A stretch of DNA of 64,000 nt from IMG/VR virus record IMGVR_UViG_3300022602_000024, positions 62,001 to 126,000 of that record; one strand, 5' to 3'. The notes under the pieces are model-generated. The model did no database searches. It worked only from the letters and a program-made list of their open reading frames with translations, and had not been told where the DNA came from. How positions within the stretch are numbered: the stretch's first letter is position 1; each line of letters starts with the position of its first letter. The position numbers were made by a program, and so were the translations under genes. Positions 21,901 to 62,983 of this stretch are shown piece by piece.

Positions 21901-22163
21901 ATCAAACGGCCTGGATGACTTGGCGTACTGCTTTCCGTGAAGTGATCAAGCTCAAACACTTCAATGCAACAGAACCTACACTGGAAACTGAGCATAGATT
22001 AACGGTATGGCTTAATAAGGCCGAAGGTGCATTTGCAGCAGATTGTTTAGCAGGTGCCCGTGATGCAGTTGAATACTATGACGGTGTTGGGGGAGATTAT
22101 GAAAAACTTAAACTAAGTTTTGAGTGGAAATGGCTTCAAGAGTATTATGATAATAAATACTAA
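18948..22163 (+). CDS. 1071-aa multi-repeat protein with degenerate GT-A-like modules
   Basis: Six ~65-aa tandem repeats plus several GT-A-like modules; the C-terminal domain is collinear with 4060-4956. Confidence 0.75.
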   Translation: MFDVFYSGPKPGLFAFERPADSLADAVSRSRTEYCWYIYGANDYSNFDFDYVPPPWQSQFVHVWPNQWQPDGNIYLAHKHNNGQWHFHEQAVRRLGIQEYWHIPDHIDPASVDTLWCPDPLAPPYIYHFPSQHQSASGVTYTVPGAVDVKLVDAFTVRAVPNPTRFGHNIAVAEFDYSWHPNPLDPPMNYVFGNQWNPPTIEATVVYHVEGATATQYMSQLARVAQDMRYWEILDDVSEFDYSWRPNPTEPPYIYVFGNQWMPPEVRPALQYRVPGATDVKYMAEPRAYRTGNPEKFITNCDCVFDYSWEPDPGSPAYNYVFGNQWWPAEVMPTVEYRMTGATETKFMMEPVAKLSATEDHWVTLFECEFDRSWCPDPGSPPYIYVFGNQWYPAEVMPTVEYHMPGASERKYVDYHRAQLTPIMDRWTIPEEVDAANIDFSWHPHPKDSPYIHHFGTEHQMSIGLTYTAPGATELKFEGDIPRIVKEKRAVEVVDIFYVDRSNPAAGVRFDRLKERYPNIQRIRYANSMMATIQRCIARARTTKFWVISSEYSYVNFDFTWHAQPWQSYMTHVFPSQHNRWSDTFLINKWEFERHAKWAESLEQFPNLNFVTNQIVARPENLDNIYYVDHGNPESAEQFALLQREFPEIARTRFVDNYLDVMKRIMATAETEYVWILNSICNYDFFDFTWKPEPWQAEMIHCFGNQQFQNRGDTFYIHVESFKTQMVDLELLDWFNVINYCTDQRVERWPTPVHLYTSDNLIEEIRNYEFTTPYVFFTNQPDIGIKDLPCLWTKKDRVIKRITRSGASVMVPRDIKADLQSQIYDYPYLEKSERLINDYYWKGKPGLDIVYISNGEPDEERWYNHLCYQSNTTDIEWVRGVNGRVAAYQEAARRSRTPWFFAVFAKLEVAGGEFPWFDWQPDFWQGPKHYIFNARNPLNGLEYGHQGVVAYCKSLVLSNNNPGIDFTLSQPHESVPILSGTAHFNQTAWMTWRTAFREVIKLKHFNATEPTLETEHRLTVWLNKAEGAFAADCLAGARDAVEYYDGVGGDYEKLKLSFEWKWLQEYYDNKY
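19245..20390 (+). repeat. Six tandem ~195-nt coding repeats (FDYSW.P.P..PPY.YVFGNQW...P...Y..PGA...K)
   Basis: Equivalent codons start at 19281, 19470, 19665, 19860, 20055 and 20259. Confidence 0.85.
22153..22159 (+). promoter_or_regulatory. T4-like late promoter motif ATAAATA
   Basis: Lies 4 nt upstream of the ATG at 22164. Confidence 0.55.
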
Positions 22164-23066
22164 ATGCTCATTAATGAAGTTATCACAGAAGGCGCAACGC
22201 CAGTATTATTCCACTATGCAGGTATAACGTCTGCCCGCGACATCCTGCGTGACGGTGTTTTTAAACTTAGCAGTACCACAGGAAATCCCAGCGAAGCCGG
22301 ATATGCTCCTAAAGGCTACCAATACTTTTTAAGCACTACCCGTAGTAAAGTTGGCGATTATCATCGTTATGTAGGATCTGGTGCCGCTATGTTTGTGTTA
22401 GATGGTAATTGGTTTGCACAACGCTATCCAGTTAAACCCATTGACTATTGGGAACGTGCTTGGCAACATAGTCCAGACCGCACACGGGAATCAGAAGACC
22501 GTGTGTTTAGCAAGGATAACGAAATTCCCATTGACGGTGTGCGTGCCCTACATGTGCTAATGAAAGAGCAAAGCGAAGTTCGCAGTCCTGCTACACGTGA
22601 AATGCTAATTGCGGCAAAACAACGTGGTATTCCTGCTTACTTGTATATGGACGAAACTGCTTGGAGATTGCAAGATACACGTCGTGCAGTTAGTATCAAA
22701 CAAGCCGCTAGTGTATTACAAGGACCTAAACCTACGCCTAGAAGTTATCGCAGTAGAAACTTCTTGGAAGACATATTAGAAATGATCTTTAAAAAGCGTA
22801 AAGCAGATCTTACTGACAGTGCTCGAAAGCGTGTGCGTACTTTGTTGGTGTATGGTGCTAGTTATCCCAACGAAGATGATGGCATTGGTGTAGACATGAG
22901 CAATGCTCGCAAACCTGGCAGCAGTGACTATGCGAGCGCAGTTAAGATTAATCAGTTTATGCGAGCCAATGGCATAAAAAATACTGTGGAACTAAAAAAC
23001 TTTCTAGTGCGTAAATGGGACGCTACTGACTTTTTTAAAGAAGATGTTAGCGAAGAAACTGTTTAA
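22164..23066 (+). CDS. Putative head-packaged protein with an ADP-ribosyltransferase-like domain
   Basis: N-terminal 'MLINEVITE', late promoter, 'LFHY.....ARDILRDG.FKLS', 'FLSTTRS', 'ESEDRV'. Confidence 0.45.
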   Translation: MLINEVITEGATPVLFHYAGITSARDILRDGVFKLSSTTGNPSEAGYAPKGYQYFLSTTRSKVGDYHRYVGSGAAMFVLDGNWFAQRYPVKPIDYWERAWQHSPDRTRESEDRVFSKDNEIPIDGVRALHVLMKEQSEVRSPATREMLIAAKQRGIPAYLYMDETAWRLQDTRRAVSIKQAASVLQGPKPTPRSYRSRNFLEDILEMIFKKRKADLTDSARKRVRTLLVYGASYPNEDDGIGVDMSNARKPGSSDYASAVKINQFMRANGIKNTVELKNFLVRKWDATDFFKEDVSEETV

Positions 23067-24165
23067 TAGTTTCAACGATTCGTTCTACTTCCCCATCTGT
23101 TAATTCGGGATAGATAGGCAAGCTCAAACACTCTCTAGTAAACGCATAACTTTCCACATAGGGATTGTTGGCATAATCCACATACTCATAACCAACTGGT
23201 AATTCATATAATGGCTTATCGTAGTTGATCTTGGTTTCAATACCATTGTTGGCAAGATGCGATTTCAATGCATGGCGACTGGCCAGTCTAATAACAAACT
23301 TACTCCACGCACTTTCTACATGTTCTCCGGGCAGTATGCAATCTACATAACCGCTTAACTGATCAATGTAATAACTAGCAATATCAGTTCTGCGGTCTTG
23401 CCAACGATCAAAGTGCCCCAACTTGACCAACATTTGCGCACAATCTACTTCAGACATTTTACTATTAGTGCCAATATCGTGATGTCCTCCGGGCTTGCCA
23501 TTGTCCCGCAAGTTTTCCATTGCGGCTGCAACACCATCGTCGTCGGTCAATATCATGCCACCTGAACCATAGTTGTTTAGATTCTTAGTAGGATCGAAAC
23601 TCAAACAACTAATATTGCCCAGGGAACCTGATGGTTGCCCTTTATATCGAGCACCAAAACTTTGTGCAGCATCTTCAATAATAAACATGTCTCGATTAAA
23701 GAATTCTGTTTGCAGTCTAAATCTATCCCAATCAATCACATGCCCCCACAAGTTGGCATACATGATCATATTGACTCCGGCACCAGCCAAGGCAAAGTCT
23801 ATGCTTTCTAAATCCATTAAGCCATTGGCATCTGTGTCGCAAAACACAGGCTCACGTCCGGCCATTAATACACTATTCAGCGTGGCAGCAAAACTCAGTG
23901 AGGGTATGAGAACCTTGCCATCTGTATACAGGCCAATGGTGCTGGCAAAGATTAGGGCCTGGGTGCATGAACCCACTGCAATAGCATGCGCACGATTACA
24001 ACGTGCGGCCATGTTTTGCTCAAAGTAACGAGTAAAGTTTCCGTCTAGGACTTTTCCTGTGCGCAGCACCTGGTCAGTGATATCCAGCAATTCTTCTCGT
24101 AGGTTGGCATATTGACGGTCAACGCCAAAGAACGGAATTATATCTTTGTTTGCCAATATTCGCAC
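23047..24165 (-). CDS. DegT/DnrJ/EryC1/StrS PLP-dependent sugar aminotransferase
   Basis: 'IIEDAAQSFGA', 'SFDPTKNLNNYGSGGMILT', 'LSLPIYPEL'. Confidence 0.9.
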   Translation of the reverse strand: MRILANKDIIPFFGVDRQYANLREELLDITDQVLRTGKVLDGNFTRYFEQNMAARCNRAHAIAVGSCTQALIFASTIGLYTDGKVLIPSLSFAATLNSVLMAGREPVFCDTDANGLMDLESIDFALAGAGVNMIMYANLWGHVIDWDRFRLQTEFFNRDMFIIEDAAQSFGARYKGQPSGSLGNISCLSFDPTKNLNNYGSGGMILTDDDGVAAAMENLRDNGKPGGHHDIGTNSKMSEVDCAQMLVKLGHFDRWQDRRTDIASYYIDQLSGYVDCILPGEHVESAWSKFVIRLASRHALKSHLANNGIETKINYDKPLYELPVGYEYVDYANNPYVESYAFTRECLSLPIYPELTDGEVERIVETIKQFLR

Positions 24166-25112
24166 TTCTTAAACCAATCGTAATACATTTTCACGCCTTG
24201 GCGAAAGTTAATAATAGGATTATATCCCAAATCCTTTTGAGCGGCATCTATGTTTAGTCTGCCCCTGCTGGGAAAGTCTTGACTCTTGTCTTGAATATCA
24301 ATCTTACCTCGTCCTACAGTTTTAATACACAAAGCAGCTGCATCTAGTAAGGTAATTGATTTGCCAGCACAACGAGTAATGTTATAGATATTCCCATTGG
24401 CTTCAGGTTTGACGGCGGCCAACACAATTCCAGCAGCCACATCATTTACGTGAGTAAAGTCCAGGCTTTCTGTCGCTCCGTGCACCACTAGTGTTTCATC
24501 TCGCATTGCGGCAAGTAAGAACTTGGACACAACTCGGTCTTCGACATCAAGCTCTCCGTACACTGCCGAAGGGCGAACAATACTGTAATCAAAACACCCA
24601 CGACGGTTGTAATCCTGGACAAGTTTTTCTCCCATATACTTCATTATACCATACTGCCCAACTGGATCGCAATCGGCAGTCTCTCTTACTCCGTCTCGGA
24701 AATTGCCGTAGACCATGCTTGAACTTACATACACAAACTTGGGTATACGGTAGTTCTTGGTCATTTCTAACAAGTTAATCAATCCTGTGCCCATTACATC
24801 AGCACCCCAAATGGGATTTTTGCTGAATACTTTTTGCCGGGGAAAACTTGCTAGATGAATAACGGCAGCAGTACTACCGCACCATGTCCTGAAGAAATCT
24901 TCTATCTTTTTATGATCTCTCAAATCTAAGTGATGTACGTTGGCACGAATACGTTTTTTACGTTCAGTTATCAAATATTCAAGTTCGTCGGGATTGACAA
25001 AACCATAGTCTGTTGCACTATCAATGATAATGCATTCATGGCCTTGTGCCTCAAGTTGCCGCACAACATTGTGTCCAATGAATCCAGCGCCTCCGGTTAC
25101 AATATATCTCAT
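24138..25112 (-). CDS. NAD-dependent sugar epimerase/dehydratase (extended SDR)
   Basis: 'TGGAGFIG', 'SSSMVYG', 'YGIMK', 'DFTHVNDVA'. Confidence 0.9.
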   Translation of the reverse strand: MRYIVTGGAGFIGHNVVRQLEAQGHECIIIDSATDYGFVNPDELEYLITERKKRIRANVHHLDLRDHKKIEDFFRTWCGSTAAVIHLASFPRQKVFSKNPIWGADVMGTGLINLLEMTKNYRIPKFVYVSSSMVYGNFRDGVRETADCDPVGQYGIMKYMGEKLVQDYNRRGCFDYSIVRPSAVYGELDVEDRVVSKFLLAAMRDETLVVHGATESLDFTHVNDVAAGIVLAAVKPEANGNIYNITRCAGKSITLLDAAALCIKTVGRGKIDIQDKSQDFPSRGRLNIDAAQKDLGYNPIINFRQGVKMYYDWFKKCEYWQTKI

Positions 25113-35848: not shown

Positions 35849-35894
35849 CTCATGTATCCTTGATACTCTTATTTATCACCTTAATATAGGTAGT

Positions 35895-39449: not shown

Positions 39450-39722
39450 TTATCGTTTTAGTAACCACATCATGTGCTCTTGAGCATTGTGCCATCTATA
39501 TTCCCATACAGGCGATCCAGGTCCGGTCCATACGGCAGCACCAACAAATCCTTTTTTGAGCCAAATACGTTTTTGGCTTAAATCGCATCGTTGTGGTGTT
39601 AATGCAAAACGTTCTTCCCACTCGGCTCTACGATAAAATGCACCATCTGCATCATCTATCCATCGGTTGTTTGACATGGCCCGCTTTCCTAGATATCCTG
39701 TGCCCATCATCAGGTGCCCCAC
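39450..39722 (-). CDS. Hypothetical protein
   Basis: 90-aa ORF. Confidence 0.5.
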   Translation of the reverse strand: MGHLMMGTGYLGKRAMSNNRWIDDADGAFYRRAEWEERFALTPQRCDLSQKRIWLKKGFVGAAVWTGPGSPVWEYRWHNAQEHMMWLLKR

Positions 39723-40555
39723 TCGTTCTTGAACAATGGCACTTGTAGTCGATCACTGTAACGCCAGCCACGTTTCATTGCGGCTAGTGCTACATTCCTT
39801 GCATTTAACGTGTAAACATTCTCTACACCGCCCACAGGCATGATATAAACATGCCCTTTAAACCCTGCTGATCTAAATTCTCTTACTGCACGTTCTGCAT
39901 CTAACAAATCTTCTTCAGTGGCTACAACAAGTTTAAGATATACTGTACCAACTTGTTCATATTCGCATACAATCTCGGGTCGGATAGCATCCGCCCACTT
40001 CTCGCCACTAGCAGGAAGTTTAGCACTTACGCTGAATGTGATTTCTCCATTTTTCCATCTAGCCCATTCTTGCAAATATCGTTTAAATTCTAGAGTTAAC
40101 TTTTGCGTGCCATTTGTTTCAAATGTGATTTCTTTCAAGTCTGACATTTTAGGATGATCCAGCAAGTCTGGATAAGCACGTTGCCATCCTAGCAATGGCT
40201 CGCCTCCTGTGATGACAAGGTGCTCATCGATCCAGGTCTTGTATGGGAGAATGTGCATGATTCTATCTGCAATGGCGTCTGTTGTGAGCATTGGACTAAG
40301 TTCTTTAAAATCAGGATGCCAACTAGCATAGCTGTCACAACCCGTAGATACAAGAGGAAGTTCTTCATATTTGTTAAAGTGGTAAACGACTTGTGCAATA
40401 TCATCAGCTTCGGTACTGAGTTCACCACGTGGCATACCAAAGCCGGCACATTTAAAGTTACAACCAAATGTGCGTAAGAATACCGACGGCACACCCATAT
40501 AGCGACCTTCTCCTTGTACGCTATAAAACAATTCTGCGATTTTGAGTTTACTCAT
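39710..40555 (-). CDS. queE: 7-carboxy-7-deazaguanine synthase (radical SAM)
   Basis: 'ELFYSVQGEG', 'VFLRTFGCNFKC...CDS', 'ITGGEPL', 'FETNGT', 'SAKL', 'SDRLQV'. Confidence 0.88.
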   Translation of the reverse strand: MSKLKIAELFYSVQGEGRYMGVPSVFLRTFGCNFKCAGFGMPRGELSTEADDIAQVVYHFNKYEELPLVSTGCDSYASWHPDFKELSPMLTTDAIADRIMHILPYKTWIDEHLVITGGEPLLGWQRAYPDLLDHPKMSDLKEITFETNGTQKLTLEFKRYLQEWARWKNGEITFSVSAKLPASGEKWADAIRPEIVCEYEQVGTVYLKLVVATEEDLLDAERAVREFRSAGFKGHVYIMPVGGVENVYTLNARNVALAAMKRGWRYSDRLQVPLFKNEWGT

Positions 40556-40820
40556 AGATTGATGACCATTTCTTAAGTTTTTCAATTTTGTGTTGCTTTG
40601 CAATGTCTAATTGTACAGTATCTAGTACACCTTGGTCAACTAAAATGTCGATTAATGCCAACATATCTCCAACTTCCATTACCAAAGTTTCTCTGTGCGG
40701 TAAATTAGTATGATGCGAAAGTTCATCTAATCCAAATCTTCTGATTTTACTAACTTCTACTATTACTTCTGCACATTCTTCTTGTAGTATACCCAAGGCT
40801 TCTTCTATTTTTGAATTCAT
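40548..40820 (-). CDS. MazG-like NTP pyrophosphohydrolase
   Basis: 'LQEECAEV...EVGDMLA' all-alpha NTP-PPase motif. Confidence 0.7.
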   Translation of the reverse strand: MNSKIEEALGILQEECAEVIVEVSKIRRFGLDELSHHTNLPHRETLVMEVGDMLALIDILVDQGVLDTVQLDIAKQHKIEKLKKWSSIYE

Positions 40821-42085
40821 GATATATTATGTCTGTTGAATTGTTCTATTAACCAAGGAAATAGTGTGGGCCAGCTGGTTCCGCGCCTGCGGTCTAATTC
40901 GTTTAAGTAGGCATACATTTCTTTTAGTTTTGAAATATTTGGTTTACTAACTGCTACTTGTTGTCTAATGCCCTTCATATACGGAGTAAAATTAGCATAC
41001 CAAGAATCCAATGATGCAGTTTCTTCCATTACTGCAATAATCTTTGCAAAATCATCATCGAACACATCTCCTCCTAAGTAATCGGGATTCAACGGCTGTG
41101 GATCTTGTACAGTCATAAAGTTCTGGTATATGGGACGCTGGCGCCTCCAACCATTCATCTTACTCATTAAGTCTGGCATGGTTTTGATACTCAATGTGTT
41201 AATAGCACTATTGATATTTAGAACGATCCAATCCTGGCTGACCAAATATTCAAAGTTTTTCTCCCATCGATCCAAGTTCAACGGAAAACGCACATATTCC
41301 TGTTCCGGACCCCAGCAATCAATACTGCCAGTGATCTGTAGAGTTTTCATTTTGCCATCTTGTACAATCTTTTTAAATCGTTCAATTTTGTTTATTAAAC
41401 GATCAGTACTACAGTTAAGATTAGTAACAATGTTAAAGAACAATTCAGGATTACTGTGTTGCTCCACAAAATCCAAACATTCGTCAAACTCCTGTTGAAA
41501 GAAAGGTTCTCCTCCTAAGAATTGAAAGTGTGTAACTTGATTGTAGTGTTGATCCCACCAGGCCCAAAACTTTTCCACATACGCACGCCGGTTGGCGTCA
41601 ACTTGATAGTTACTATTTAATTCAAATGTTGCATATTTCCAATCACCAAACTTTTTGTTTTCGGCTTGCCATGCGCTGGAGTAATGCGGCCCGCAGTAGA
41701 TACATTTTAAATCACATGTGTTATCAAAGTATACTTCTACCATCTTCGGTACTACACTGGTTGCAGTAGGATCAGTATATACTTCGTTGGGGGTTACATG
41801 TTGCAATTTTTCATTGTTGAAATGTCTATCACTGTAACCACCAGCATCTTCAATTTTGCGACAGTATTCGCAACCATTGCCAGGCCAAGAGCCGTCTAAC
41901 ATCAGTTGACGATCGCGTTGCTTTTCTGGCAAGTTATGAAAATCGTCAAAAGAGTCTAAGTCAAACTTATACTGACGTGTCCGATGGCAACTTGCGCTGG
42001 CGCTGTTGGCCATGTATATTGTGCTCCAAGTCCACTTTAGTTGGCACGTTGGATCTATGTTGATTGGCCATGTTTTTTGAGTCAT
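40817..42085 (-). CDS. Radical SAM protein, paralogue of 4949 and 6321
   Basis: CDLKCIYC, 'LGGEPF'; N-terminal CQLKW...SCHR...CEYC. Confidence 0.82.
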   Translation of the reverse strand: MTQKTWPINIDPTCQLKWTWSTIYMANSASASCHRTRQYKFDLDSFDDFHNLPEKQRDRQLMLDGSWPGNGCEYCRKIEDAGGYSDRHFNNEKLQHVTPNEVYTDPTATSVVPKMVEVYFDNTCDLKCIYCGPHYSSAWQAENKKFGDWKYATFELNSNYQVDANRRAYVEKFWAWWDQHYNQVTHFQFLGGEPFFQQEFDECLDFVEQHSNPELFFNIVTNLNCSTDRLINKIERFKKIVQDGKMKTLQITGSIDCWGPEQEYVRFPLNLDRWEKNFEYLVSQDWIVLNINSAINTLSIKTMPDLMSKMNGWRRQRPIYQNFMTVQDPQPLNPDYLGGDVFDDDFAKIIAVMEETASLDSWYANFTPYMKGIRQQVAVSKPNISKLKEMYAYLNELDRRRGTSWPTLFPWLIEQFNRHNIS

Positions 42086-42120
42086 GTGTGTTTTCTCTGT
42101 ATTCTTTTTTGGCTCTACGC

Positions 42121-43326
42121 TCAATGTGATTCATTAGTTTTTTGGTCGACATTTTTAATTATCTCGGTTACAGTTTTAGCAGTATATGGACCTAGTGTCC
42201 ATCCTAAGTGCCCGTGTCCTGTATTATAAAACACTTTTGCATTTTTGTCACTCTGTTTGATGATAGGCATCATGTTTGGCGTCATTGGGCGAAGGCAAGC
42301 ATATTGTGTGTAATCGTGTGTATTGATATTTGGAAAGTTTGTTTTGATCCACTTTAACAAAGGCTCAATTCTAGCACGAGTGATATCATAATTTTCCCCT
42401 GCTAGTTCAGCAGTCCCAGCTACACGAAACTTATTACCTAAACTTGAAGTAACAATTTTGGCTTCGTCGTCTAACAAACTTACTTTAGGCAAGTATTTGG
42501 CGTCAACATTGTTAATAGTAACACTATATCCTTTGATAGGGTATACTCCGATGTTGTCGCCGATTTGTTCAGCAAGCTCTGTGCTGCCCACTCCATTTGC
42601 ACCCACCACTGCATCATAATCTTCAGTTAATGTTTCTAGATCTTCGATCTTCCATTCATAAAAGAATTCAACCGCATATTTGTTTTTAAGGATATCTGCA
42701 AGTTGGTAACAAAACTTGTGTATATCTCCAGTCCAGTCACTGGGAGTAAATGTTGCGCCAACAACTCCATCAACATCAACCAACGCAGGATCTATAGTGC
42801 TGACAGCAGAAGGAGCAACCTCAACTCTATCTAATCCATTTGCATTGTATAACTTGGTAACTGCTTGTGCATTTTGCCAATAACTGTCTTTTTTATAGAA
42901 ATGCAAAATACCACAGTTGCTGCGATCAAACTCGATGGTTTCTTCTGCACAGATCTCATCGTACAATCTGCGACTCTCCAAAGCCATTTTTACAGTTGCG
43001 GCAGTATTTTTGGGACCTTCATTTCGAATAGTTGCCCACAAGAACCGAACTACCCAACGCCACATGGCCCAATCTAAACGCCAAGGGCGGAATAGAAATG
43101 GAGCATCTTTGGTAAACATCCACTTGATGCCTTTGTATACATTGCTCCATGATGTCCATGTTTCACTATTGCTGACAGATATTTGTCCACCATTGGCAAA
43201 ACTGGTTTTCATACCAGCATAGCGTTCTGCTTCGTATACCGTAACTTCATATCCTTCTCTTGCAAGATAATACGCAGTTGTGACTCCAGTGATACCTGCC
43301 CCGATTACTGCTACTGTTTTAGTCAT
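42121..43326 (-). CDS. dadA: FAD-dependent D-amino acid dehydrogenase
   Basis: 'GAGITGVTTAYYL', 'TSFANGGQIS', 'YPIKGYS', 'LRPMTPN', 'NTGHGHLGWT'. Confidence 0.85.
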   Translation of the reverse strand: MTKTVAVIGAGITGVTTAYYLAREGYEVTVYEAERYAGMKTSFANGGQISVSNSETWTSWSNVYKGIKWMFTKDAPFLFRPWRLDWAMWRWVVRFLWATIRNEGPKNTAATVKMALESRRLYDEICAEETIEFDRSNCGILHFYKKDSYWQNAQAVTKLYNANGLDRVEVAPSAVSTIDPALVDVDGVVGATFTPSDWTGDIHKFCYQLADILKNKYAVEFFYEWKIEDLETLTEDYDAVVGANGVGSTELAEQIGDNIGVYPIKGYSVTINNVDAKYLPKVSLLDDEAKIVTSSLGNKFRVAGTAELAGENYDITRARIEPLLKWIKTNFPNINTHDYTQYACLRPMTPNMMPIIKQSDKNAKVFYNTGHGHLGWTLGPYTAKTVTEIIKNVDQKTNESH

Positions 43327-43664
43327 TAATGATTCCGTTTCCCGTCAAATACACAGTTAAAAACAAAGTCAGTGTTGCAGTTGTTGATTACACGATGGAA
43401 AGCACCGTCTGGGATTAAAACAATATCTCCACCTTTGACTGGGAACGGCTCATCAGTTTCATCGCCCACAATCATTTGACCATAGCCCGAAATAAAGATA
43501 TAAACTTCTTCTTGTCCGGGGTGGCGATGACCCCGTGTTTGTTGTCCGGGGTGTAGTTGTGTTTGGCTCAAGACCAAGTTATTTAATGTCTTGTTGTCGA
43601 TTAATCGATAGGTTTCATTATCTTTGACAACTTCTCCGCCTATATTGTTGATGTTTAATGTCAT
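43326..43664 (-). CDS. Cupin-domain protein
   Basis: 'HRHPGQEEVY...G.G...GDIVLIPDGAFHRV.N'. Confidence 0.8.
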   Translation of the reverse strand: MTLNINNIGGEVVKDNETYRLIDNKTLNNLVLSQTQLHPGQQTRGHRHPGQEEVYIFISGYGQMIVGDETDEPFPVKGGDIVLIPDGAFHRVINNCNTDFVFNCVFDGKRNH

Positions 43665-44321: not shown

Positions 44322-44801
44322 TTAAATAAACTCGCCGTCTTCGCGGTGACCCTGGCGATAGGCCATATTTGACGGAGTTTCTCTAACTTCAACTTTTGAA
44401 CACCAAACTCGGTCTGCTTCAGACTTACCGCAATTTGGCAAGAAGATAGTATTCACATACTCATATAGAAAATCGGCAATGCCTTCGCATCCGGTTTTTT
44501 CTACTTCTGTAATTTTTGCCAAACCTAATGCACCTAACTGTTTGATGGTATCATAGTACGGATCGTCTTGAGCCAATAGTAGAACATGGTCAAAGTATTC
44601 TTCTAAAAAGTCCTTGAGTGGGCGTAAACCACCGTAATCAAAACACCAATTGCGGGCGTCAAGGTCATCACACTCAAATTCAAATTTGAATGATAGTGCG
44701 TAACCATGGATAAGATTACAATGACTGTCAGCCCTCCATTGACGATATGCCACTGGGGCTAAATGTGAATATTCTTTTGTTGATATAAATTTTTTAGACA
44801 T
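44322..44801 (-). CDS. queD: 6-carboxy-5,6,7,8-tetrahydropterin synthase
   Basis: 'HCNLIHGY', 'DYGGL', 'FDHVLL', 'CEGIA', 'VEVRETPSN'. Confidence 0.85.
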   Translation of the reverse strand: MSKKFISTKEYSHLAPVAYRQWRADSHCNLIHGYALSFKFEFECDDLDARNWCFDYGGLRPLKDFLEEYFDHVLLLAQDDPYYDTIKQLGALGLAKITEVEKTGCEGIADFLYEYVNTIFLPNCGKSEADRVWCSKVEVRETPSNMAYRQGHREDGEFI

Positions 44802-44807
44802 GCTGGT

Positions 44808-44875
44808 TCTCCTATGTTAAATTTTAGCATAGGCGGCAGAGTTTGTATAGCGGGATGAACGCCGAAGACCGCTTG
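44808..44875 (-). ncRNA. Structured 5' leader of queD: candidate preQ1-I-like pseudoknot plus an RBS-sequestering hairpin
   Basis: AGCGG-UCUUCGGCGUUCAUC-CCGCU-AUACAAAC-UCUGCCG, then a CCUAUG...CAUAGG stem overlapping the AGGAGA RBS; TAAATA at 44885-44890. Confidence 0.4.
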
Positions 44876-44887
44876 TTGAATATGTAT

Positions 44888-45076
44888 TTATTGCTCACGA
44901 GTCCAAGGCTTTTCATTCCCTGCCCATTCTTGTATATTTACGCTCCATGACATAAGGCGATTGTATAGGGGATACAACCAGCCCCAATCAAACCATCCCA
45001 TTGGGAAACTGATCCAGTGTCCTAGATAGTATAATATTTCACTTAATATACGAGCCAGGATTTTTTTAATAAACAT
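44888..45076 (-). CDS. Hypothetical Trp-rich small protein
   Basis: 62-aa ORF. Confidence 0.55.
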   Translation of the reverse strand: MFIKKILARILSEILYYLGHWISFPMGWFDWGWLYPLYNRLMSWSVNIQEWAGNEKPWTREQ

Positions 45077-47092: not shown

Positions 47093-47842
47093 TTAGCAAG
47101 AATACTCTTGTTGCAGTTTAACATTGTCAAAGAATTCCTTCTTTGTACCTGCATCATCCTTGAATGCGCCTTTAAGGACTGTGGTTTGTGTTAGACTGCT
47201 CTTGGCCATAATACCACGGTTTTCGCAACATCCATGAGTCATTTGCATATACACACCAATGTCCGATGCACCAGTGGCTGCACCTATTTCTTTAGCAATG
47301 TCATTACAAAGTTCCTCCTGGAGAGTACCACGTCGGGCACACCATTGGGCGATTCGGGAATACTTGCTGAGTCCAATGAGCTTTTCCGCGGCAATAATGC
47401 CAATATAAGCAACACCAGATACGGGTTGGTGATGATGGCTACACATACTGCGAAGCTCACTGCGCACAACCAACATACCTTCGTAGCGGTCTTGCGAATC
47501 ATTTGGGAATGCTGTTGCGTCGGGTGCTGAATCATATCTTCCACTCATTACTTCATTGATGTACATTTTTGCCAGGCGTTTGGCAGTACCTTTACTACTG
47601 GGATCTGTTTCGGTATCGATTAGCAAAGTCTTTAACACTTGCTCAAATGCCTCTGTTGCTTCTTCGATTAATTTTTCTCTAATAGCAGGACTATCTACAT
47701 ATTCGCTGATGTTGTCGTTGGCCCAGAATCTCTTGCCATCACGCCGCATTTTAAAACGTAATACATCTGCTAGCGTTGATTCTTCATAGCCGCCGTCACC
47801 GGCCATGGCGTCTAGTGCAGTTTCTTTTTTCTTTTTTGTCAA
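47093..47842 (-). CDS. folE: GTP cyclohydrolase I
   Basis: 'TAKRLAKMY', 'SMCSHHH', 'IGLSKYSRI', 'LQEEL', 'HGCCENRG'; TTG start with GGAG RBS. Confidence 0.93.
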   Translation of the reverse strand: MTKKKKETALDAMAGDGGYEESTLADVLRFKMRRDGKRFWANDNISEYVDSPAIREKLIEEATEAFEQVLKTLLIDTETDPSSKGTAKRLAKMYINEVMSGRYDSAPDATAFPNDSQDRYEGMLVVRSELRSMCSHHHQPVSGVAYIGIIAAEKLIGLSKYSRIAQWCARRGTLQEELCNDIAKEIGAATGASDIGVYMQMTHGCCENRGIMAKSSLTQTTVLKGAFKDDAGTKKEFFDNVKLQQEYSC

Positions 47843-47879
47843 TTTCGTTCTCCGAGTTATTTAAAAGTCGTGGATGACT

Positions 47880-48488
47880 TCATACTATGATTGTGATTTG
47901 TCTCAAATCTGGATAAGCAACAAATTCGGGTACTGGATTCAGCTCTTTGATACCCTCTAACAAAGCCAGTCCTTGTTCCGCTTCTTCGATAGTGGGTTTG
48001 TAATGATAGCCGACCTTAAAAGTCTGTTGGTTTTCCCAAGGACTAATAGTTAAGTCTCTACCATCATATCTTTGTTGCAAAATTGCGTGATACGCTTCTG
48101 CATCATCTAACAGTATAGCACCTCCACGACCTATGTGTAAAGGTTTTCCATGTCCAAAACTTAAACATTGTATTTGTTTTGGGCGATACATGTTGCGTTC
48201 AAGCCGGCGAGCACTGTCCCATATTCGTGTACCTTCGAACTTGTATTCACCGACCCATTGCTGTCTGTGTGGCAAAGTGTCTGGATAGTACTCATATTCA
48301 ATGCCCAACTTGTGCATCAGCATAGGAATACTCAAATAAGTAAAGGGCGTAAATGAGCATTGTTTAATTTGATCATACCGTAAGCATAACTCTATTGCGT
48401 GAGTACAACAATCAGTCATGATTGCATAAGGTGCTCCTGTAAACTCAGCTAGAGCACGTTCAAATTTTAAAATCTTATCAAAACTCAT
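47880..48488 (-). CDS. Short DegT-like PLP-dependent aminotransferase
   Basis: 'TDCCTHAIEL', 'WDSA', 'CLSFGHGKPL..GRGGAIL'; only about 200 aa. Confidence 0.7.
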   Translation of the reverse strand: MSFDKILKFERALAEFTGAPYAIMTDCCTHAIELCLRYDQIKQCSFTPFTYLSIPMLMHKLGIEYEYYPDTLPHRQQWVGEYKFEGTRIWDSARRLERNMYRPKQIQCLSFGHGKPLHIGRGGAILLDDAEAYHAILQQRYDGRDLTISPWENQQTFKVGYHYKPTIEEAEQGLALLEGIKELNPVPEFVAYPDLRQITIIV

Positions 48489-49450
48489 CTTGTATACCAC
48501 TTATAAGCACTATCTACAATAGTGTCAATGTCACTGTATTGGGGTTGCCATAGTAACACTTCTTTGGCCTTGGCTGCTGATGCCATCAATGTTGCAGGAT
48601 CCCCGGCACGCATGGGTCCAAATATGTAATCAAGTCCATATTTTCTTCTCACATATTCAGCTATTTCACGATTGCTAACACCAGTATTGGTACTGAGATT
48701 AAATCGATATGCCCCCGGTTGTGGATAGTCATCCAACAAGAAGCCCACTGCTTGAATATGTGCAGTGGCCAAGTCCCATACGTGTATGTAATCACGCACA
48801 CACGTACCGTCATCAGTGGAAAAATGTCCACCGTTGATCACAAACGGCTTTTTTGCAATGCTGGCTTCTAGTGCACGAGCAATGATGTGTGTAGCACCAG
48901 GTTCTTGCCCGAGATCATGTGTGAAGGGTTCTGCACCTGCGGCATTGAAGTACCTAAAGCAAACACTATGAATACCGTAGGCTCTACTGTAATCATTCAG
49001 TATGCGTTCAATCATGGCCTTGGTTTGGCCATAAGGACTGATTGGTTGTACTGGTGCATCTTCAGTAATAGGAAACGTTTCGGGTTCGCCGTAGACGCTG
49101 GCACTGCTACTGAACAAGATCACAGGCTTTTTAGGCATATCTTTGATCACATTCAGCATGGTGATAGTCTTGGCCACATTGTTGTCATAGTATTCACCGG
49201 GATCAGTGACACTGGGTCCAACAAGACTAGTGCCGGCACAATGCACAATCACGTCAGGTTCATACATGACCATGGCCGATAGAGCTACAGGACTGGCATA
49301 GTCATAAGCAATGAAACTGTCCATACCTTTCATGGTATGCACACGATATTCGCGATCTAATAGGATTACTTGATCGCCATGTTGCTTGAATGCTCTCGCA
49401 ACATGGCTACCAATATAACCACAACCACCAGTTACTAGTATTTTACGCAT
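48485..49450 (-). CDS. galE: UDP-glucose 4-epimerase
   Basis: 'TGGCGYIGSH', 'FSSSASVYG', 'PYGQTK', 'RYFNAAGA', 'DGTCVRDYIHV.DLA'. Confidence 0.88.
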   Translation of the reverse strand: MRKILVTGGCGYIGSHVARAFKQHGDQVILLDREYRVHTMKGMDSFIAYDYASPVALSAMVMYEPDVIVHCAGTSLVGPSVTDPGEYYDNNVAKTITMLNVIKDMPKKPVILFSSSASVYGEPETFPITEDAPVQPISPYGQTKAMIERILNDYSRAYGIHSVCFRYFNAAGAEPFTHDLGQEPGATHIIARALEASIAKKPFVINGGHFSTDDGTCVRDYIHVWDLATAHIQAVGFLLDDYPQPGAYRFNLSTNTGVSNREIAEYVRRKYGLDYIFGPMRAGDPATLMASAAKAKEVLLWQPQYSDIDTIVDSAYKWYTR

Positions 49451-55562: not shown

Positions 55563-56172
55563 AAAATTGTACTTGCTCTATTAGTTCGTAGTCTTGTTTA
55601 AAGTATTCTTTGACTTGATATAAGTATTTAGAATTGTTCAGTTGTTCTGTAAAAATTTCTTTGAATCTTTTTCTTTCAGGGCTAGCATCACTGACATGTT
55701 GATAATCATATTTGTTGTATCTATTGGTCATGCCTTGTGAGTTTAAAAATTGACTGAACTGTTCTCTATAGTCAGGACCGCATTTAAAAAATACGCATCT
55801 AGTTAAATCTATATTGTCTATAAAGTATACTTGTTTTTCTGTATGGTCGTCAAATGCAATCTTATCAAACACTAGATCAAAGAACGCACGTCCAGCAAAA
55901 GCAAAATCTATATTTTGGTGATATAGATACATATATTCTGCAATACCACTGATCCACCGTTCAATCGGATCTCGTAACACTATTAAAGGTGTTTTTGTTG
56001 ATACATCGTCGGTGTAATAGTTATAAAATTCCCACCCCCAATCCTTTAGATTGGGTTTTGTCCAGGAACTGGCATTTTTTGGAATGTGTACATACATTAA
56101 ATTAGTATGTGGAGAAGTCATGCACTCTCCAAATACATGTCCTCTATTCTGATAGTAATCAATAAACTTCAT
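55549..56172 (-). CDS. Sulfotransferase-like protein
   Basis: 'YVHIPKNASSW' (5'-PSB loop), 'LRDPIERWISG' (3'-PB), 'YFKQDYEL'. Confidence 0.65.
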   Translation of the reverse strand: MKFIDYYQNRGHVFGECMTSPHTNLMYVHIPKNASSWTKPNLKDWGWEFYNYYTDDVSTKTPLIVLRDPIERWISGIAEYMYLYHQNIDFAFAGRAFFDLVFDKIAFDDHTEKQVYFIDNIDLTRCVFFKCGPDYREQFSQFLNSQGMTNRYNKYDYQHVSDASPERKRFKEIFTEQLNNSKYLYQVKEYFKQDYELIEQVQFYGTR

Positions 56173-57230
56173 ACTGTTTGTTGATACTTTCGTACTTGTT
56201 GTTCTATTAGAGGAGCAAAGTGTATATTTGGTTTAATTTGTTTTGCCATTAACAACTGATCCATGGCAGTTTTATACAATGGATGTGACGTTGTTAGCAC
56301 TTGCATATCGTTGTATATCATCAATGGCTGAGCACCCCAGTTATCTAATTTTGCTATTACACCGTCAGATTTGTAATGATTACATAAAATGGCAAAATTA
56401 ACTATATCCCCGGCGTTGGCAGATTGCAACACAAAATTATATAATGAACGTGGACGTTTTGTTTGAGTATTTTGATAATCAAACAACCAATCTAAATTTT
56501 CAAGAAGTACTTTATGTTTACCCGGTCTACGAACATTTTCGTATACTTCGGCCGAACCTGCATCCATGCTTATATGAAATTCTTTAATATGTGCTAATAC
56601 AGGACTATCGGGTAATAATTTTTTCATTAGTAGCCCGTTGGTGCGCAATATAATTGAATGATTTTCTGTTGGTTGCCAGTTTAATAGCAAGGGACGGTAT
56701 AACATACTTGCTAGTACATCACCATTGCCAGTCATTATCAATGTAGTTGGTTTGTTAAATTTTTGTATTAATGTTACAAAATGATTTATTAATTTTTTTG
56801 ACTTTTCAAACTGAGGACCTGATGTTATATTGCTTGGCCCTGACCTACAAGTTGGGCACGCAAGATTACAACTTTCATCCATAGAAATAGTTATTTCATA
56901 CTGGTGTACATTATAACTCTTATTAAGTAAGTTGCAATGCTCTACGGCACAGTATGTAAATTTTTTATCGTTTACATCTTGTTGTATTTCTTTTGCAATA
57001 GGACTATCCCATATGTCTTCTAAACTGTCAAACTCCAGTATATTACCAACCGGTATCGGTAACCAGGCTTCGCAACTACATACAAAACAGTCGCCTCTTG
57101 AATCTATAATAAGTGTATAGTAAGGTACATTACACGAATTAGTAATCTGCCCTGGGTACTTGCTACCTCTTGGATATTCTTTAAGATTAAACTGCTGAAT
57201 TTTTGGCAGTTTAGAAACATCTATAGTCAT
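56169..57230 (-). CDS. Radical SAM protein with N-terminal SPASM-like domain
   Basis: CNLACPTC; N-terminal 'CNVPY...GDCFVCSC...VGNI...C...C'. Confidence 0.8.
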   Translation of the reverse strand: MTIDVSKLPKIQQFNLKEYPRGSKYPGQITNSCNVPYYTLIIDSRGDCFVCSCEAWLPIPVGNILEFDSLEDIWDSPIAKEIQQDVNDKKFTYCAVEHCNLLNKSYNVHQYEITISMDESCNLACPTCRSGPSNITSGPQFEKSKKLINHFVTLIQKFNKPTTLIMTGNGDVLASMLYRPLLLNWQPTENHSIILRTNGLLMKKLLPDSPVLAHIKEFHISMDAGSAEVYENVRRPGKHKVLLENLDWLFDYQNTQTKRPRSLYNFVLQSANAGDIVNFAILCNHYKSDGVIAKLDNWGAQPLMIYNDMQVLTTSHPLYKTAMDQLLMAKQIKPNIHFAPLIEQQVRKYQQTV

Positions 57231-61687: not shown

Positions 61688-62983
61688 TTACCGGTAATAA
61701 ATGCTATAGATTTCTTTAATATTTAGTTCAGGGTGGACTTCTTGAAGTCGATCTAACATGAAATGAATATTTTCATTATCTTTGGAAAAATTAATTGTAT
61801 TTAAATGATATTCTAAATCTGTAATAGCAGACCGTAATCGTTGATTTTCGACCACTGGTGGTAAAATCTTTAAAGCATCTAGTTGTTGCTGTACTTGATC
61901 TCTCATATATTCTGGCACTGATTCTATGCCAAAATTTTCTTCGAGTTTAACTACGGGGGTAAATCCAAATCCCAAGTAAACATTTTTATAAGGACTGTAC
62001 CTAGTGATCAAGTGTTGCCATACTTCGGGCACCTGATGAAAATTCAAATTTGTAATCACAGTATTAAAATTCACTGAGTTTCTTGGATTATTTTTTTCTG
62101 CTAACCAATCAAATATAGAATCTATGTTTTTTTGTATGTAAGGCCAACGACTAGGAGTTCTTTGTATGTATGCAATATCATCTATGGCATCTATACTTAA
62201 ATTGAACATGACTTGATCAAAATTTCCCAAAATATCCAGCAAACGTTTGTTGACATTGGTACAGTTGGTGTTGATGAATGCCAATATGTGTTGACTATGT
62301 CCTGTTGTAACTAGATCTTCTAAGAAATCTATGTTTTCTTTGATAATGGTTGGTTCTCCGCCAGTGAGCCATACCGTTTCCAATGAACTGTAATGATCTT
62401 TCAGTATAGTAGCCAATGGTCTCTTAACTGGCCAATCATAAAGATCTCCAAACTCGCCACCGTTGAGAACTCCAATGGATGTTTTGCTAAATTTAATTTG
62501 TTGTTTTGTAGTAATATTTCTATCTAAGAAAAATTCTGAATATTGTATACTGTTGTCAGGCCCACACATTTTACAGGCCAGGTTGCATAAATTGCCGGTA
62601 CTGATCTGCATGTCAATCCAGTCAACATTTAATTCGCCATTATTTTCTGCTGCATACTGGATTCGATCCTGCACACGACTCAATGGTATTCGATCATTGG
62701 CATTTTTTCTTACACTATTGCCTTTGGTGTGATCTTTATTTTCTAGTTTCCAACAAGAGTTACAACATTCAGGTTCCTTGCCGTTGATTAAATCTAATCT
62801 TAATTGTTTTTGTTCTTGGCTATTCCAAAAATCAGATATATTGTGTGTATTAACATTATATACTTGTTGTTGATCGTCGGTCATTCTACCAAGTATGGCA
62901 CAACATGATACTATATCGCCATTGGGCTGAATCATATTGTGTGCAAAAGGATATGCACAAATTGTAGGACTGTGTATTTCCAT
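61688..62983 (-). CDS. Radical SAM protein with N-terminal SPASM/Twitch-like domain
   Basis: CNLACKMC, 'LTGGEP'; N-terminal CAYPF...SCC...CNSC. Confidence 0.82.
   Translation of the reverse strand: MEIHSPTICAYPFAHNMIQPNGDIVSCCAILGRMTDDQQQVYNVNTHNISDFWNSQEQKQLRLDLINGKEPECCNSCWKLENKDHTKGNSVRKNANDRIPLSRVQDRIQYAAENNGELNVDWIDMQISTGNLCNLACKMCGPDNSIQYSEFFLDRNITTKQQIKFSKTSIGVLNGGEFGDLYDWPVKRPLATILKDHYSSLETVWLTGGEPTIIKENIDFLEDLVTTGHSQHILAFINTNCTNVNKRLLDILGNFDQVMFNLSIDAIDDIAYIQRTPSRWPYIQKNIDSIFDWLAEKNNPRNSVNFNTVITNLNFHQVPEVWQHLITRYSPYKNVYLGFGFTPVVKLEENFGIESVPEYMRDQVQQQLDALKILPPVVENQRLRSAITDLEYHLNTINFSKDNENIHFMLDRLQEVHPELNIKEIYSIYYR

Follow-up and report, generated by a model that had tools for sequence, protein, structure and literature searches.

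A small gene of the QueD (queuosine-precursor) family, encoded by an uncultured virus, is preceded by a leader whose letters suggest a knotted RNA, which raises the question whether this leader is a riboswitch and, if so, whether it belongs to one of the described preQ1 classes. The locus lies in a 64,000-nt stretch of IMG/VR record IMGVR_UViG_3300022602_000024 (positions 62,001 to 126,000 of that record), which we refer to as the window. The original prediction, made from the sequence alone, proposed a preQ1-I-like pseudoknot in the queD leader, followed by a hairpin covering the start of the ribosome-binding site (RBS), and interpreted it as a variant aptamer that senses a deazaguanine or pterin intermediate and controls translation of the phage queD. 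Here, we describe how these proposals fared when the leader was compared with its homologs, and which explanation currently fits best.

The sequence itself was found exactly as it had been described, on the minus strand at window positions 44799-44891, and the observation is therefore confirmed. The element is non-coding and lies between the stop codon of an upstream 62-aa ORF and the RBS. The P1 stem consists of AGCGG and CCGCU, separated by a 15-nt loop (44868-44854) and followed by the tail AUACAAAC (44848-44841) and by UCUGCCGCC (44840-44832). The parts of the locus, in the conserved pairing register explained below, are as follows.

44885-44891, minus strand: ATAAATA box, resembling a T4-type late promoter (promoter function inferred); TAAATA lies at 44890-44885, its TAA (44890-44888) is the stop codon of the upstream 62-aa ORF, and the box ends 11 nt before P1.
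44869-44873, minus strand: 5′ strand of P1, AGCGG, pairing with 44849-44853.
44864-44868, minus strand: loop L1, UCUUC, with invariant C44867 and U44866; the family consensus is N-C-U followed by 1-8 variable nt.
44856-44863, minus strand: 5′ strand of P2, with GGCG (variable helix), bulged U44859 and the invariant U-C-R (U44858, C44857, A44856).
44854-44855, minus strand: loop L2, UC, with the invariant C44854 directly 5′ of the P1 3′ strand, the position of the preQ1-I 'specificity base'.
44849-44853, minus strand: 3′ strand of P1, CCGCU.
44839-44848, minus strand: loop L3, AUACAAAC plus the invariant UC; the consensus is W-D-A-H-A-H-A-Y-U-C, with three alternating invariant A's.
44832-44838, minus strand: 3′ strand of P2, U-G-C-CGCC; C44833 and C44832 are shared with the sequestering hairpin.
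44811-44833, minus strand: predicted RBS-sequestering hairpin, CCUAUG (44833-44828), an 11-nt loop and CAUAGG (44816-44811), mutually exclusive with the last two pairs of P2.
44799-44813, minus strand: RBS, with Shine-Dalgarno AGGAG (44813-44809) and start codon AUG (44801-44799).
44821-44849, minus strand: sigma70-like promoter sequence embedded in the leader, with -35 TATACA (44849-44844), a 17-nt spacer, TG and -10 TAAAAT (44826-44821), which may act as a bypass promoter.
44322-44801, minus strand: the downstream gene, encoding a 159-aa QueD/PTPS-family protein of the 'C-x3-HGY' subtype.

Is the leader more than a chance fold? A minimum-free-energy fold of the single sequence is unremarkable (z = -0.38), but this method cannot model pseudoknots and thus says nothing for or against the element. 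Comparison with homologous leaders is more informative. The element is conserved in 48 matches in the window plus the 80 loci fetched by homology to the QueD-like protein, and a gene-blind pattern scan of viral contigs brought the total to at least 163 hits and at least 119 distinct aptamers, in more than a hundred uncultured, mostly freshwater, phages. A covariance model finds the element once in the window, at 64 bits, with the next best match at 9.6 bits. On 86 distinct sequences not used to build the model, 91.7% of cells pair against 78.8 +/- 0.8% in shuffles, the covariation score is 0.284 against 0.096 (reached by 0 of 500 shuffles), and slid registers give 31-45%. Conservation and covariation of P1 and the pseudoknot in homologous leaders had been named beforehand as a test of the proposal, and the element passed.

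The comparative structure is an H-type pseudoknot of about 48 nt. P1 has 5 bp and is 98.8-99.3% paired (99.3% in the 86 independent sequences), with compensatory GC/CG/UA and CG/UA/AU changes at two co-varying pairs; in the independent set, pair 2 is GC 73, CG 9 and UA 2, and pair 3 is CG 83 and AU 3. RNAalifold predicts P1 independently. P2 is a variable helix of 3-7 bp, followed by an invariant U-C mismatch, an invariant C-G pair and an R-Y pair that is Watson-Crick in 119 of 119 distinct aptamers (A-U in 108 and G-C in 11). The variable helix co-varies (for example GGCG/CGCC, GGCU/AGCC, GGGC/GUCC, GAAC/GUUC, UGACAC/GUGUCA and AGUGU/ACACU), P2 is 85.4% paired in the independent set, and its anchored score is 4.84 against 3.44 +/- 0.11 with permuted partners. 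The register proposed in the original prediction (CGGCG with UGCCG) is possible in this one sequence but is not conserved, with 51.3% paired against 49.5% in shuffles (45 of 500), and was rejected. The conserved register instead pairs G44863-C44832, G44862-C44833, C44861-G44834 and G44860-C44835, after which U44859 is bulged, U44858 lies opposite C44836, and C44857-G44837 and A44856-U44838 pair. MAFFT alignments (A1 and A2) misplace a 1-nt length difference in L2, so that P2 statistics were taken from anchored parsing and from two model-based alignments (A3 and A4), the latter of which lean towards the modelled P2.

Besides the helices, at least ten unpaired nucleotides are invariant: C-U in L1, C in L2, the alternating A's and U-C in L3, and the mismatch. 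Among the 119 distinct aptamers, the first three L1 nucleotides are UCU in 60, CCU in 43 and ACU in 16, and L2 is UC in 82, CC in 17, AC in 12 and UUC in 8. The C of L2 is also invariant in the protein-anchored set (A1 column C22, as are L1 columns C9 and T10), whereas in the larger set the final C was required by the search pattern, which imposes part of the invariance seen there. We also counted independent covariation events on a QueD protein tree, but the counts were about the same as with shuffled labels (for example 23 against 21.9 for P1 pair 2); either the short-protein tree is unresolved or leaders recombine, and this analysis was not used as evidence.

The motif is tightly linked to one subfamily of QueD/PTPS-like genes. 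Of 132 distinct downstream proteins, 128 are HGY-type QueD-like, and the other four loci have that gene 385-1030 nt further downstream. The protein in the window matches Pfam PTPS at 7e-15, yet it scores only 29.1 bits against the NCBIfam QueD cutoff of 89.25, and its best PDB match is 7v0f, a 6-carboxytetrahydropterin synthase (E = 0.004). QueD keeps three Zn-binding histidines (A-H-R ... C-x3-H-G-H), while all 128 family proteins have HGY in place of HGH and the window protein has A-Y-R. The gene is thus a divergent QueD paralog lacking two zinc histidines, a member of the PTPS superfamily that falls short of the QueD criteria. Among 127 contexts, FolE is nearby in 55 and a QueE-like radical-SAM gene in 44, whereas neither QueC nor DpdA/TGT was found among the window ORFs scanned or among the commonest neighbor families.

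Outside uncultured phages the motif was not found in the collections scanned. A scan of 185,579 species-representative bacterial and archaeal genomes, restricted to the commonest sequence variant, returned 12 pattern matches, about the number expected by chance (our own estimate from the information content of the pattern); none has a P1, and their model scores are 29 bits or less. No isolate phage in a 50,697-record collection carries the leader. The nearest annotated QueD-like genes are those of Xanthomonas phages X1 and BUDD, of which BUDD has a 29-nt intergenic gap and no motif. Literature searches for a prior description found none, although the library searched is not exhaustive.

How might such a leader act on its gene? 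At least six unrelated downstream platforms (CCUAUG/CAUAGG; ACUCC/GGAGU; GUCAUC/GAUGAC; UGUCGUC/GAUGGCA; GCCAUUG/CAAUGGC; CCAUUG/CAAUGG; CUCUAUU/AAUAGAG) all pair the P2 3′ strand with the Shine-Dalgarno sequence or the AUG. The hairpin of the window is conserved in 97 unique leaders (designated type A), and where the P2 end changes, the stem survives by G-U pairs. In the knot-free ensemble, 56% of all RBS pairing goes to the P2 3′ strand, and blocking that strand opens the RBS in 98 of 132 leaders, while blocking an equal stretch of L3 opens it in 17 of 132. The platform alone is on average more stable (-8.3 kcal/mol) than the P2 duplex alone (-5.6), making OFF the predicted default, and formation of the knot should free the RBS. 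This ON reading rests on nearest-neighbor folding that ignores tertiary structure and pseudoknot entropy, and P2 is fairly GC-rich and might form without any ligand.

Transcription of the leader is likewise inferred from sequence. ATAAATA occurs 4 times in the window against 19.3 +/- 4.0 expected, and all four lie upstream of a gene start on the same strand; a TAnnn[T/A] hexamer ends 3-12 nt before P1 in 131 of 138 family contexts, against 75 of 138 in a coding control. An exact T4 late promoter, TATAAATA, is absent from the window, and only the shorter box is supported, through its depletion elsewhere and its positions. Most type A leaders also contain the internal near-consensus sigma70 promoter, which, if dominant, would produce mRNAs that lack the aptamer. 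In public RNA data, only short contigs in two freshwater metatranscriptomes cover part of the gene, with no 5′ ends.

Taken together, we favor, with moderate confidence, the explanation that the element is the aptamer and expression platform of a translational riboswitch candidate carried only by phages. The pseudoknot, its helices and its invariant unpaired nucleotides are established by the comparative analysis, and the sharing of the P2 3′ strand with an alternative RBS- or AUG-occluding hairpin is shown by comparison and modeling. The remainder is inference, including ligand binding itself: without a ligand the hairpin would win and the QueD-like gene would be poorly translated, whereas a small molecule stabilizing the knot would capture the anti-RBS strand, free the RBS and turn translation ON. 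The transcript probably starts a few nucleotides upstream of P1, from an ATAAATA-type promoter. Because an invariant cytosine sits just before the P1 3′ strand and an A-rich tail follows P1, as in preQ1-I, and because the gene is a QueD paralog that often lies between FolE and a QueE-like enzyme, the most likely ligand would be a compound with a guanine-like face from that pathway. For an ON switch, the substrate of the enzyme (dihydroneopterin triphosphate) or its precursor (GTP/guanine) is the more logical candidate, with a 7-deazapurine (CDG, preQ0, preQ1) as the alternative. The interpretation in the original prediction is thus partly supported: a conserved, co-varying H-type pseudoknot with a preQ1-I-like general layout does precede a phage QueD-family gene, and a deazaguanine or pterin ligand remains a reasonable inference, but the proposed P2 register is not the conserved one, the Rfam preQ1 models give no match, the predicted switch logic is the opposite of that of described preQ1 switches, and the gene is a divergent QueD paralog.

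Several other explanations are conceivable, although we consider each of them unlikely. A true, if divergent, member of the preQ1-I class, the class to which the original proposal pointed, binding preQ1 or preQ0 and repressing queD translation, would fit the layout, the QueD-family gene and the fact that some members (loci L109 and L130) share AGAGG...CCUCU-AUAAAAA; however, the preQ1 models do not recognize the RNA, L109 included, L1 lacks the conserved U/UU, P2 is too long and carries the anti-RBS, so that binding should activate rather than repress, and activation of a biosynthetic gene by the end product of its pathway would be odd. Somewhat less improbable is a protein-binding operator, in which the QueD-like protein or another phage RNA-binding protein binds the pseudoknot to autoregulate translation, as with the T4 gene 32 leader or ribosomal-protein leaders. 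Strict linkage to a single protein subfamily is also what such an operator would show, the motif was not found in the cellular genomes scanned, and pseudoknotted autoregulatory leaders occur in T4-type phages. On the other hand, T-fold enzymes are not known to bind RNA, and conserved competition between P2 and an RBS-occluding helix in six or more platform designs is the hallmark of a folding switch, while a repressor needs only a site over the RBS. Furthermore, at four loci (L126, L084, L137 and L168) another gene lies between the motif and queD, so that the motif controls the first cistron, not necessarily queD.

About equally doubtful is a ligand-independent element that sets mRNA stability or translation level, or acts as an RNA thermometer or ion sensor, through the equilibrium between knot and hairpin. 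Its probable location at the very 5′ end of the transcript, the similar size of the P2 and platform energies and the absence of a known ligand are compatible with this view, but at least ten invariant unpaired nucleotides plus an invariant mismatch in a 48-nt RNA are far more constraint than a stability element or thermometer needs, and the association with one metabolic gene is strict. The least likely option, already disfavored, is that conservation reflects DNA signals only (two overlapping promoters and an operator) with incidental RNA structure. The upstream box and the internal promoter could point this way, as could L3 position 4, which is C in 89 of 97 type A leaders but in only 3 of 29 type C leaders; yet the compensatory changes in P1 and P2 and the perfect R-Y covariation have no DNA-level explanation, and leaders of types B and C lack the internal promoter but keep the aptamer.

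A further-reaching possibility, which we regard as tentative, is that this would be the first riboswitch class whose whole known distribution is viral: a roughly 50-nt pseudoknot aptamer, derived from or convergent with the preQ1-I architecture, that turns ON translation of a zinc-ligand-lacking QueD paralog when a guanine-like pathway metabolite (for example dihydroneopterin triphosphate/GTP, or a 7-deazapurine) accumulates during infection, in most members combined with a nested host-type promoter that bypasses the switch early in infection. If a ligand is found, the element would be a new riboswitch class, or a fourth architecture in the preQ1 family with inverted logic, and would show that phages evolve their own metabolite sensors. 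It would also give a handle on an uncharacterized phage pathway built from FolE, the QueD paralog and a QueE-like enzyme. The strict gene link makes the question of what this paralog produces directly testable. The very small aptamer with its modular, predicted ON platforms is also attractive as a synthetic-biology part.

Riboswitches in phages are described as rare, and those reported (the glutamine riboswitch/glnA motif in pelagiphages, the OM43 phage Melnitz and cyanophages) provide a precedent in aquatic myophages (PMC9004378). Those are copies of classes that also exist in bacteria, whereas the present motif was not found in the 185,579 species genomes scanned or in any Rfam family. The T4 gene 32 mRNA leader is likewise an H-type pseudoknot at the 5′ end of a phage mRNA that controls translation of the downstream gene, but it nucleates cooperative binding of its own protein product and represses, while here the competing RBS-occluding helix and the many invariant loop bases point to a folding switch.

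The closest system is the preQ1-I riboswitch (RF00522), especially type I, with features taken from PMC11625349 and PMC8752633. Both are small H-type pseudoknots with a 5-bp P1 capped by G-C pairs and an A-rich L3 directly after P1, interrupted by a pyrimidine (C here), and both precede a gene of the queuosine-precursor enzyme family and act (here, by prediction) on translation. The cytosine directly 5′ of the P1 3′ strand is preceded by U in type I and by A in types II and III (PMC11625349), and here by U in 82 (plus 8 with UUC), C in 17 and A in 12 of 119. In contrast, the candidate is about 48-52 nt rather than about 34 nt long, L2 is only 2-3 nt, L3 ends with an extra invariant U-C, and it was found only in phage contigs. 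The conserved U (UU in types I and III) that follows the P1 5′ strand and contacts the ligand (PMC8752633) is replaced by a variable first base (U 60, C 43, A 16) and an invariant C-U. The P2 of preQ1-I has about 3-4 pairs and its 3′ strand includes Shine-Dalgarno bases or feeds a terminator, so that binding represses, whereas P2 here is 8-11 positions long with the U-C mismatch, and its 3′ strand is the anti-RBS, giving a predicted ON logic opposite to every described preQ1 switch. The Rfam preQ1-I, -II and -III models gave no hit at gathering score on the window and none at E <= 10 on 301-, 61- and 53-nt stretches, where other families were listed down to about 9 bits. preQ1-II and -III form HLout-type pseudoknots with an embedded hairpin, while the topology here is a plain H-type.

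The guanidine-III (ykkC-III) riboswitch is a compact, roughly 41-nt H-type pseudoknot with a comparable P1-L1-P2-L2-P1′-L3-P2′ topology and a purine-rich L3, whose folding is thought to increase translation of the downstream gene; its Rfam model gave no hit in these searches, its conserved nucleotides differ, and it is associated with guanidine exporters and carboxylases rather than with a QueD paralog. Finally, the translational ON adenine riboswitch of Vibrio vulnificus add has the logic predicted here, as the 3′ strand of an aptamer helix doubles as the anti-RBS, ligand binding frees the Shine-Dalgarno sequence and AUG, and the switch is activated by the substrate of the regulated enzyme, although the add switch is a three-way junction rather than a pseudoknot and shares no sequence relation with the phage element.

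In the minus-strand leader that we examined, a pseudoknot lies between the end of an upstream ORF and the start of a QueD-like gene. Every string quoted in the original prediction is present at its place, and the leader contains, in order of transcription:

44891-44885, minus strand: ATAAATA box, within which the upstream 62-aa ORF ends with TAA at 44890-44888
44873-44869, minus strand: 5′ strand of P1, AGCGG
44868-44854, minus strand: 15-nt loop between the two P1 strands
44853-44849, minus strand: 3′ strand of P1, CCGCU
44848-44839, minus strand: tail, AUACAAAC-UC
44838-44832, minus strand: UGCCGCC
44833-44828 with 44816-44811, minus strand: hairpin of CCUAUG with CAUAGG
44813-44809, minus strand: AGGAG
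44801-44799, minus strand: AUG of a 159-aa ORF that matches Pfam PTPS at 7e-15

An MFE fold of this single sequence is unremarkable (z = -0.38), but such folding cannot represent pseudoknots.

The window is identical to part of a 354-kb IMG/VR viral contig (L001; L numbers denote the viral loci collected here), and the DNA runs that hold it are freshwater, lake and pond metagenomes. It encodes a phage-type DNA polymerase, an HNH endonuclease, thymidylate synthase and Dam methylase, together with many radical-SAM enzymes and sugar-nucleotide enzymes. The density of radical-SAM/SPASM genes is unusually high, with at least seven in 64 kb (among them 4949-10197, plus strand; 56169-57230 and 61688-62983, minus strand), and there is also a Nol-like carbamoyltransferase (14905-16407) and a second DegT/epimerase pair (23047-25112). 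No cultured phage shares the leader. The family is not restricted to lakes, as a wastewater RNA/cDNA library (run X24) contains a contig that matches the platform (44799-44834) and continues into a variant aptamer (...UCAUCCCGCUUUACAAAUUCUGCAA...). Two freshwater metatranscriptomes hold short contigs of the queD-like gene and of a neighboring gene.

To see whether the element is conserved in homologous leaders, we fetched 80 viral loci by homology to the QueD-like protein, and most of the closest ones showed the same leader. P1 varied visibly (GCGG/CCGC, CCGG/CCGG, GUGG/CCAC, GAGG/CCUC), and so did the loop-to-tail pairing. Parsing the leaders with anchors revealed a conserved architecture, in which a P1 of 5 bp is followed by L1 (N-C-U plus 1-8 nt) and by P2, consisting of a variable 3-7 bp helix, then an invariant U opposite an invariant C, then C-G, then a purine-pyrimidine pair. 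L2 has 2-3 nt ending in C, and L3 reads W-D-A-H-A-H-A-Y-U-C. The purine-pyrimidine pair is A-U in 108 and G-C in 11 of 119 distinct aptamers, with no exception, although neither search pattern required that complementarity.

A covariance model built from 29 leaders finds one copy in the window at 64 bits, with the next best match at 9.6 bits when filters are off. It also finds extra copies in a few loci, including a tandem pair in L012/L013. A gene-blind pattern scan of the viral collection brought the total to at least 163 hits. On 86 distinct sequences from that independent set, P1 plus P2 are 91.7% paired, against 78.8 +/- 0.8% for shuffled partners, and the covariation score is 0.284 against 0.096 (reached by 0 of 500 shuffles). 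Registers slid by 1-3 columns give 31-45%, and 7 of 11 pairs show changes on both sides. These figures come from alignments fitted to a model that contained P2, part of the sequence invariance in the large set is imposed by the search pattern, and a protein tree was not usable for counting independent events. The seed-related set gives the same picture, and RNAalifold on its own predicts P1. The P2 register of the original prediction, in which the loop CGGCG pairs with the downstream UGCCG, scores 51.3% against 49.5% shuffled and is rejected. The observation of a pseudoknot in this leader is confirmed, with a corrected P2 register.

Of 132 distinct first ORFs downstream of the motif, 128 form one family with the window's QueD-like protein. 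In the other four loci (a cupin, a small ORF and two mobile-element-like ORFs), that gene follows 385-1030 nt later on the same strand, and the linkage is therefore complete. The leader is a hot spot for rearrangement. In L038/L040 (2282-3001), a 5-codon queD stub is followed by an inserted Zn-finger/HNH-like ORF before the real gene, while a GIY-YIG-like ORF lies between the aptamer and queD in L168 (4831-5901), and a cupin gene lies between them in L126. L012/L013 (2717-2985) carry two aptamers in tandem, and L010 and L011 carry N-terminal queD fragments. In L213/L214, a GIY-YIG/NUMOD3 gene lies directly after an identical queD-like gene in other phages.

The protein (44322-44801, minus strand) is a divergent member of the PTPS/QueD superfamily. 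It scores 29 bits with NCBIfam QueD against a cutoff of 89, and its best solved relative is a 6-carboxytetrahydropterin synthase, at E = 0.004. All 128 proteins carry C-x3-H-G-Y where QueD has H-G-H. The window protein also has A-Y-R where canonical QueD has A-H-R, although this first motif lies outside the stretch aligned to the solved structure. Two of the three zinc-binding histidines of QueD/PTPS therefore appear to be replaced by tyrosine. More than 2,000 clusters of close relatives exist in metagenomes, none with an informative name.

The gene neighborhoods of 127 distinct contexts were compared, and the commonest neighbors are listed here.

Commonest neighbors of the motif, with the number of contexts (of 127) in which each occurs.
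GTP cyclohydrolase I: 55
QueE-like radical-SAM enzyme: 44
SDR epimerase/dehydratase: 38
HIT protein: 32
Cytidylyltransferase-like protein: 30
MazG: 21
Phosphoribosyltransferase: 18

In the window, the gene set around the switch candidate (39710-43664 and 47093-49450, minus strand) comprises FolE (47093-47842), a QueE-like radical-SAM gene (39710-40603; a weak match, 51 bits), a twitch-domain radical-SAM gene, a D-amino-acid-dehydrogenase-like flavoenzyme, a cupin, a short DegT-like protein and a GalE-like epimerase. No QueC or DpdA/TGT was seen in the window ORFs scanned. The recurrence of phosphoribosyltransferase, HIT, MazG and cytidylyltransferase genes across the 127 loci hints at a nucleotide-level 7-deazapurine or pterin route rather than the classical preQ0/DpdA route. 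The term queD leader is a fair shorthand, as long as it is not taken to name the pathway product.

The part of the leader downstream of the aptamer is not conserved as sequence, but it is conserved as logic. In the commonest design (type A; 97 unique leaders, including the window), the last two C's of the P2 3′ strand are also the first two bases of a hairpin whose other arm is CAUAGG of the Shine-Dalgarno region. Other designs pair ACUCC with GGAGU (L036, L039) or CCUC with GAGG (L062). Four more cover the AUG, pairing GUCAUC with GAUGAC (L012), UGUCGUC with GAUGGCA (29 leaders), GCCAUUG with CAAUGGC (L165) or CCAUUG with CAAUGG (L082), and a further design pairs CUCUAUU with AAUAGAG (L157). 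In every design the sequestering helix uses bases of the P2 3′ strand. In a knot-free partition function, 56% of all pairing by RBS bases goes to that strand, and making it unavailable opens the RBS in 98 of 132 leaders, against 17 of 132 for an equally long control block in L3. The platform alone is on average more stable than the P2 duplex alone (-8.3 against -5.6 kcal/mol).

The best-supported reading is a translational ON switch. In this view, the RBS is occluded by default, and anything that stabilizes the knot, most plausibly a ligand bound at the P1/P2 junction lined by the invariant loop bases, would release it. While the structure and the mutually exclusive pairings are established by our analysis, the direction of regulation and the existence of a ligand, and with it any ligand binding, are inferred.

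The ATAAATA box ends 11 nt before P1. This heptamer is four- to five-fold depleted in the window (4 copies observed against 19.3 +/- 4.0 expected), and all four copies (19058-19064, minus strand; 22153-22159, plus strand; 35870-35876, minus strand; 44885-44891, minus strand) lie upstream of a gene start on the same strand, as expected for a T4-type late-promoter box that is avoided elsewhere. The full TATAAATA does not occur in the window at all. A TAnnn[T/A] hexamer sits 3-12 nt before P1 in 131 of 138 family contexts. From these signals, the aptamer is inferred to lie, probably, at the very 5′ end of a transcript.

In type A leaders (97 among L001-L199), the L3 tail plus the RBS-sequestering hairpin also spell a near-consensus sigma70 promoter (44821-44849, minus strand, in the window). 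The -35 is TATACA/TTTACA, the spacer is 17-18 nt, and TG precedes the -10, which is TATAAT in 57 leaders and TAAAAT in 21. With thresholds of at least 4/6 for the -35 and 5/6 for the -10, 89 of 97 leaders pass. The invariant loop positions are T1, A2 and T6 of the -10. L3 position 4 is C in 89/97 type A leaders, but in only 3/29 leaders of type C, a design that lacks the -10. This may be an early promoter that bypasses the switch. In 59 of the 97 type A leaders, though not in the window's own copy, the hairpin contains a minimal ORF, AUG-CUA-UAA, with no Shine-Dalgarno sequence before it, which is probably a by-product of UAUG plus UAUAAU.

With regard to a possible ligand, the invariant C before the P1 3′ strand and the A-rich L3 are the two features that, in preQ1-I, read the guanine-like face of the ligand and dock into P1 (PMC11625349, PMC8752633). 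Pterins and 7-deazapurines share that face. For an ON switch before the second enzyme of a FolE-QueD-QueE-type route, the substrate side (dihydroneopterin triphosphate, GTP/guanine) makes more regulatory sense than the product side (CDG, preQ0, preQ1), although this is inference only.

Other explanations were considered. A protein operator, for example autoregulation by the QueD-like protein, fits the strict gene link, but it does not explain the conserved competition between the knot and the RBS helix. Similarly, a ligand-free stability or thermosensing element leaves at least ten invariant unpaired bases unexplained. Purely DNA-level signals are excluded by the compensatory changes, while a genuine, repressing preQ1-I member is disfavored by the Rfam result described below and by the platform logic.

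Taken together, the element is a strongly supported, apparently undescribed, phage-restricted riboswitch candidate with preQ1-I-like features and predicted ON logic. The original interpretation, a preQ1-I-like variant aptamer that senses a deazaguanine or pterin intermediate and controls phage queD translation, is supported in part. We consider it nearly certain that the element is a structured cis-regulatory RNA, and slightly more likely than not that it is a metabolite-binding ON riboswitch. That the ligand is a guanine-like pterin or deazapurine remains a tentative proposal.

A scan of one genome for each of 185,579 bacterial and archaeal species, using the commonest sequence variant, found 12 matches, roughly the number that we estimated for chance from the information content of the pattern. 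None of these has a P1 or a model score above 29 bits, and as far as tested, the motif is confined to phage contigs. Literature searches found no prior description. In the literature searched, riboswitches in phages are described as rare, and those reported belong to bacterial classes.

In a comparison with Rfam 15, no family reaches gathering score in the whole window. No preQ1, guanidine-III, SAM-II/V or other pseudoknot riboswitch is found at E <= 10 on short stretches of the window or of L109, a leader whose P1 and tail most resemble the Bacillus type of preQ1-I. Of the published preQ1-I features, the element has the H-type fold, the specificity-position C preceded mostly by U, and the A-rich L3, while it lacks the U/UU after P1, a short RBS-containing P2 and recognition by the model. 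We therefore do not assign it to preQ1-I. In the predicted mechanism, it would work like a small H-type-pseudoknot riboswitch, with the ON logic of the add adenine switch or of guanidine-III.
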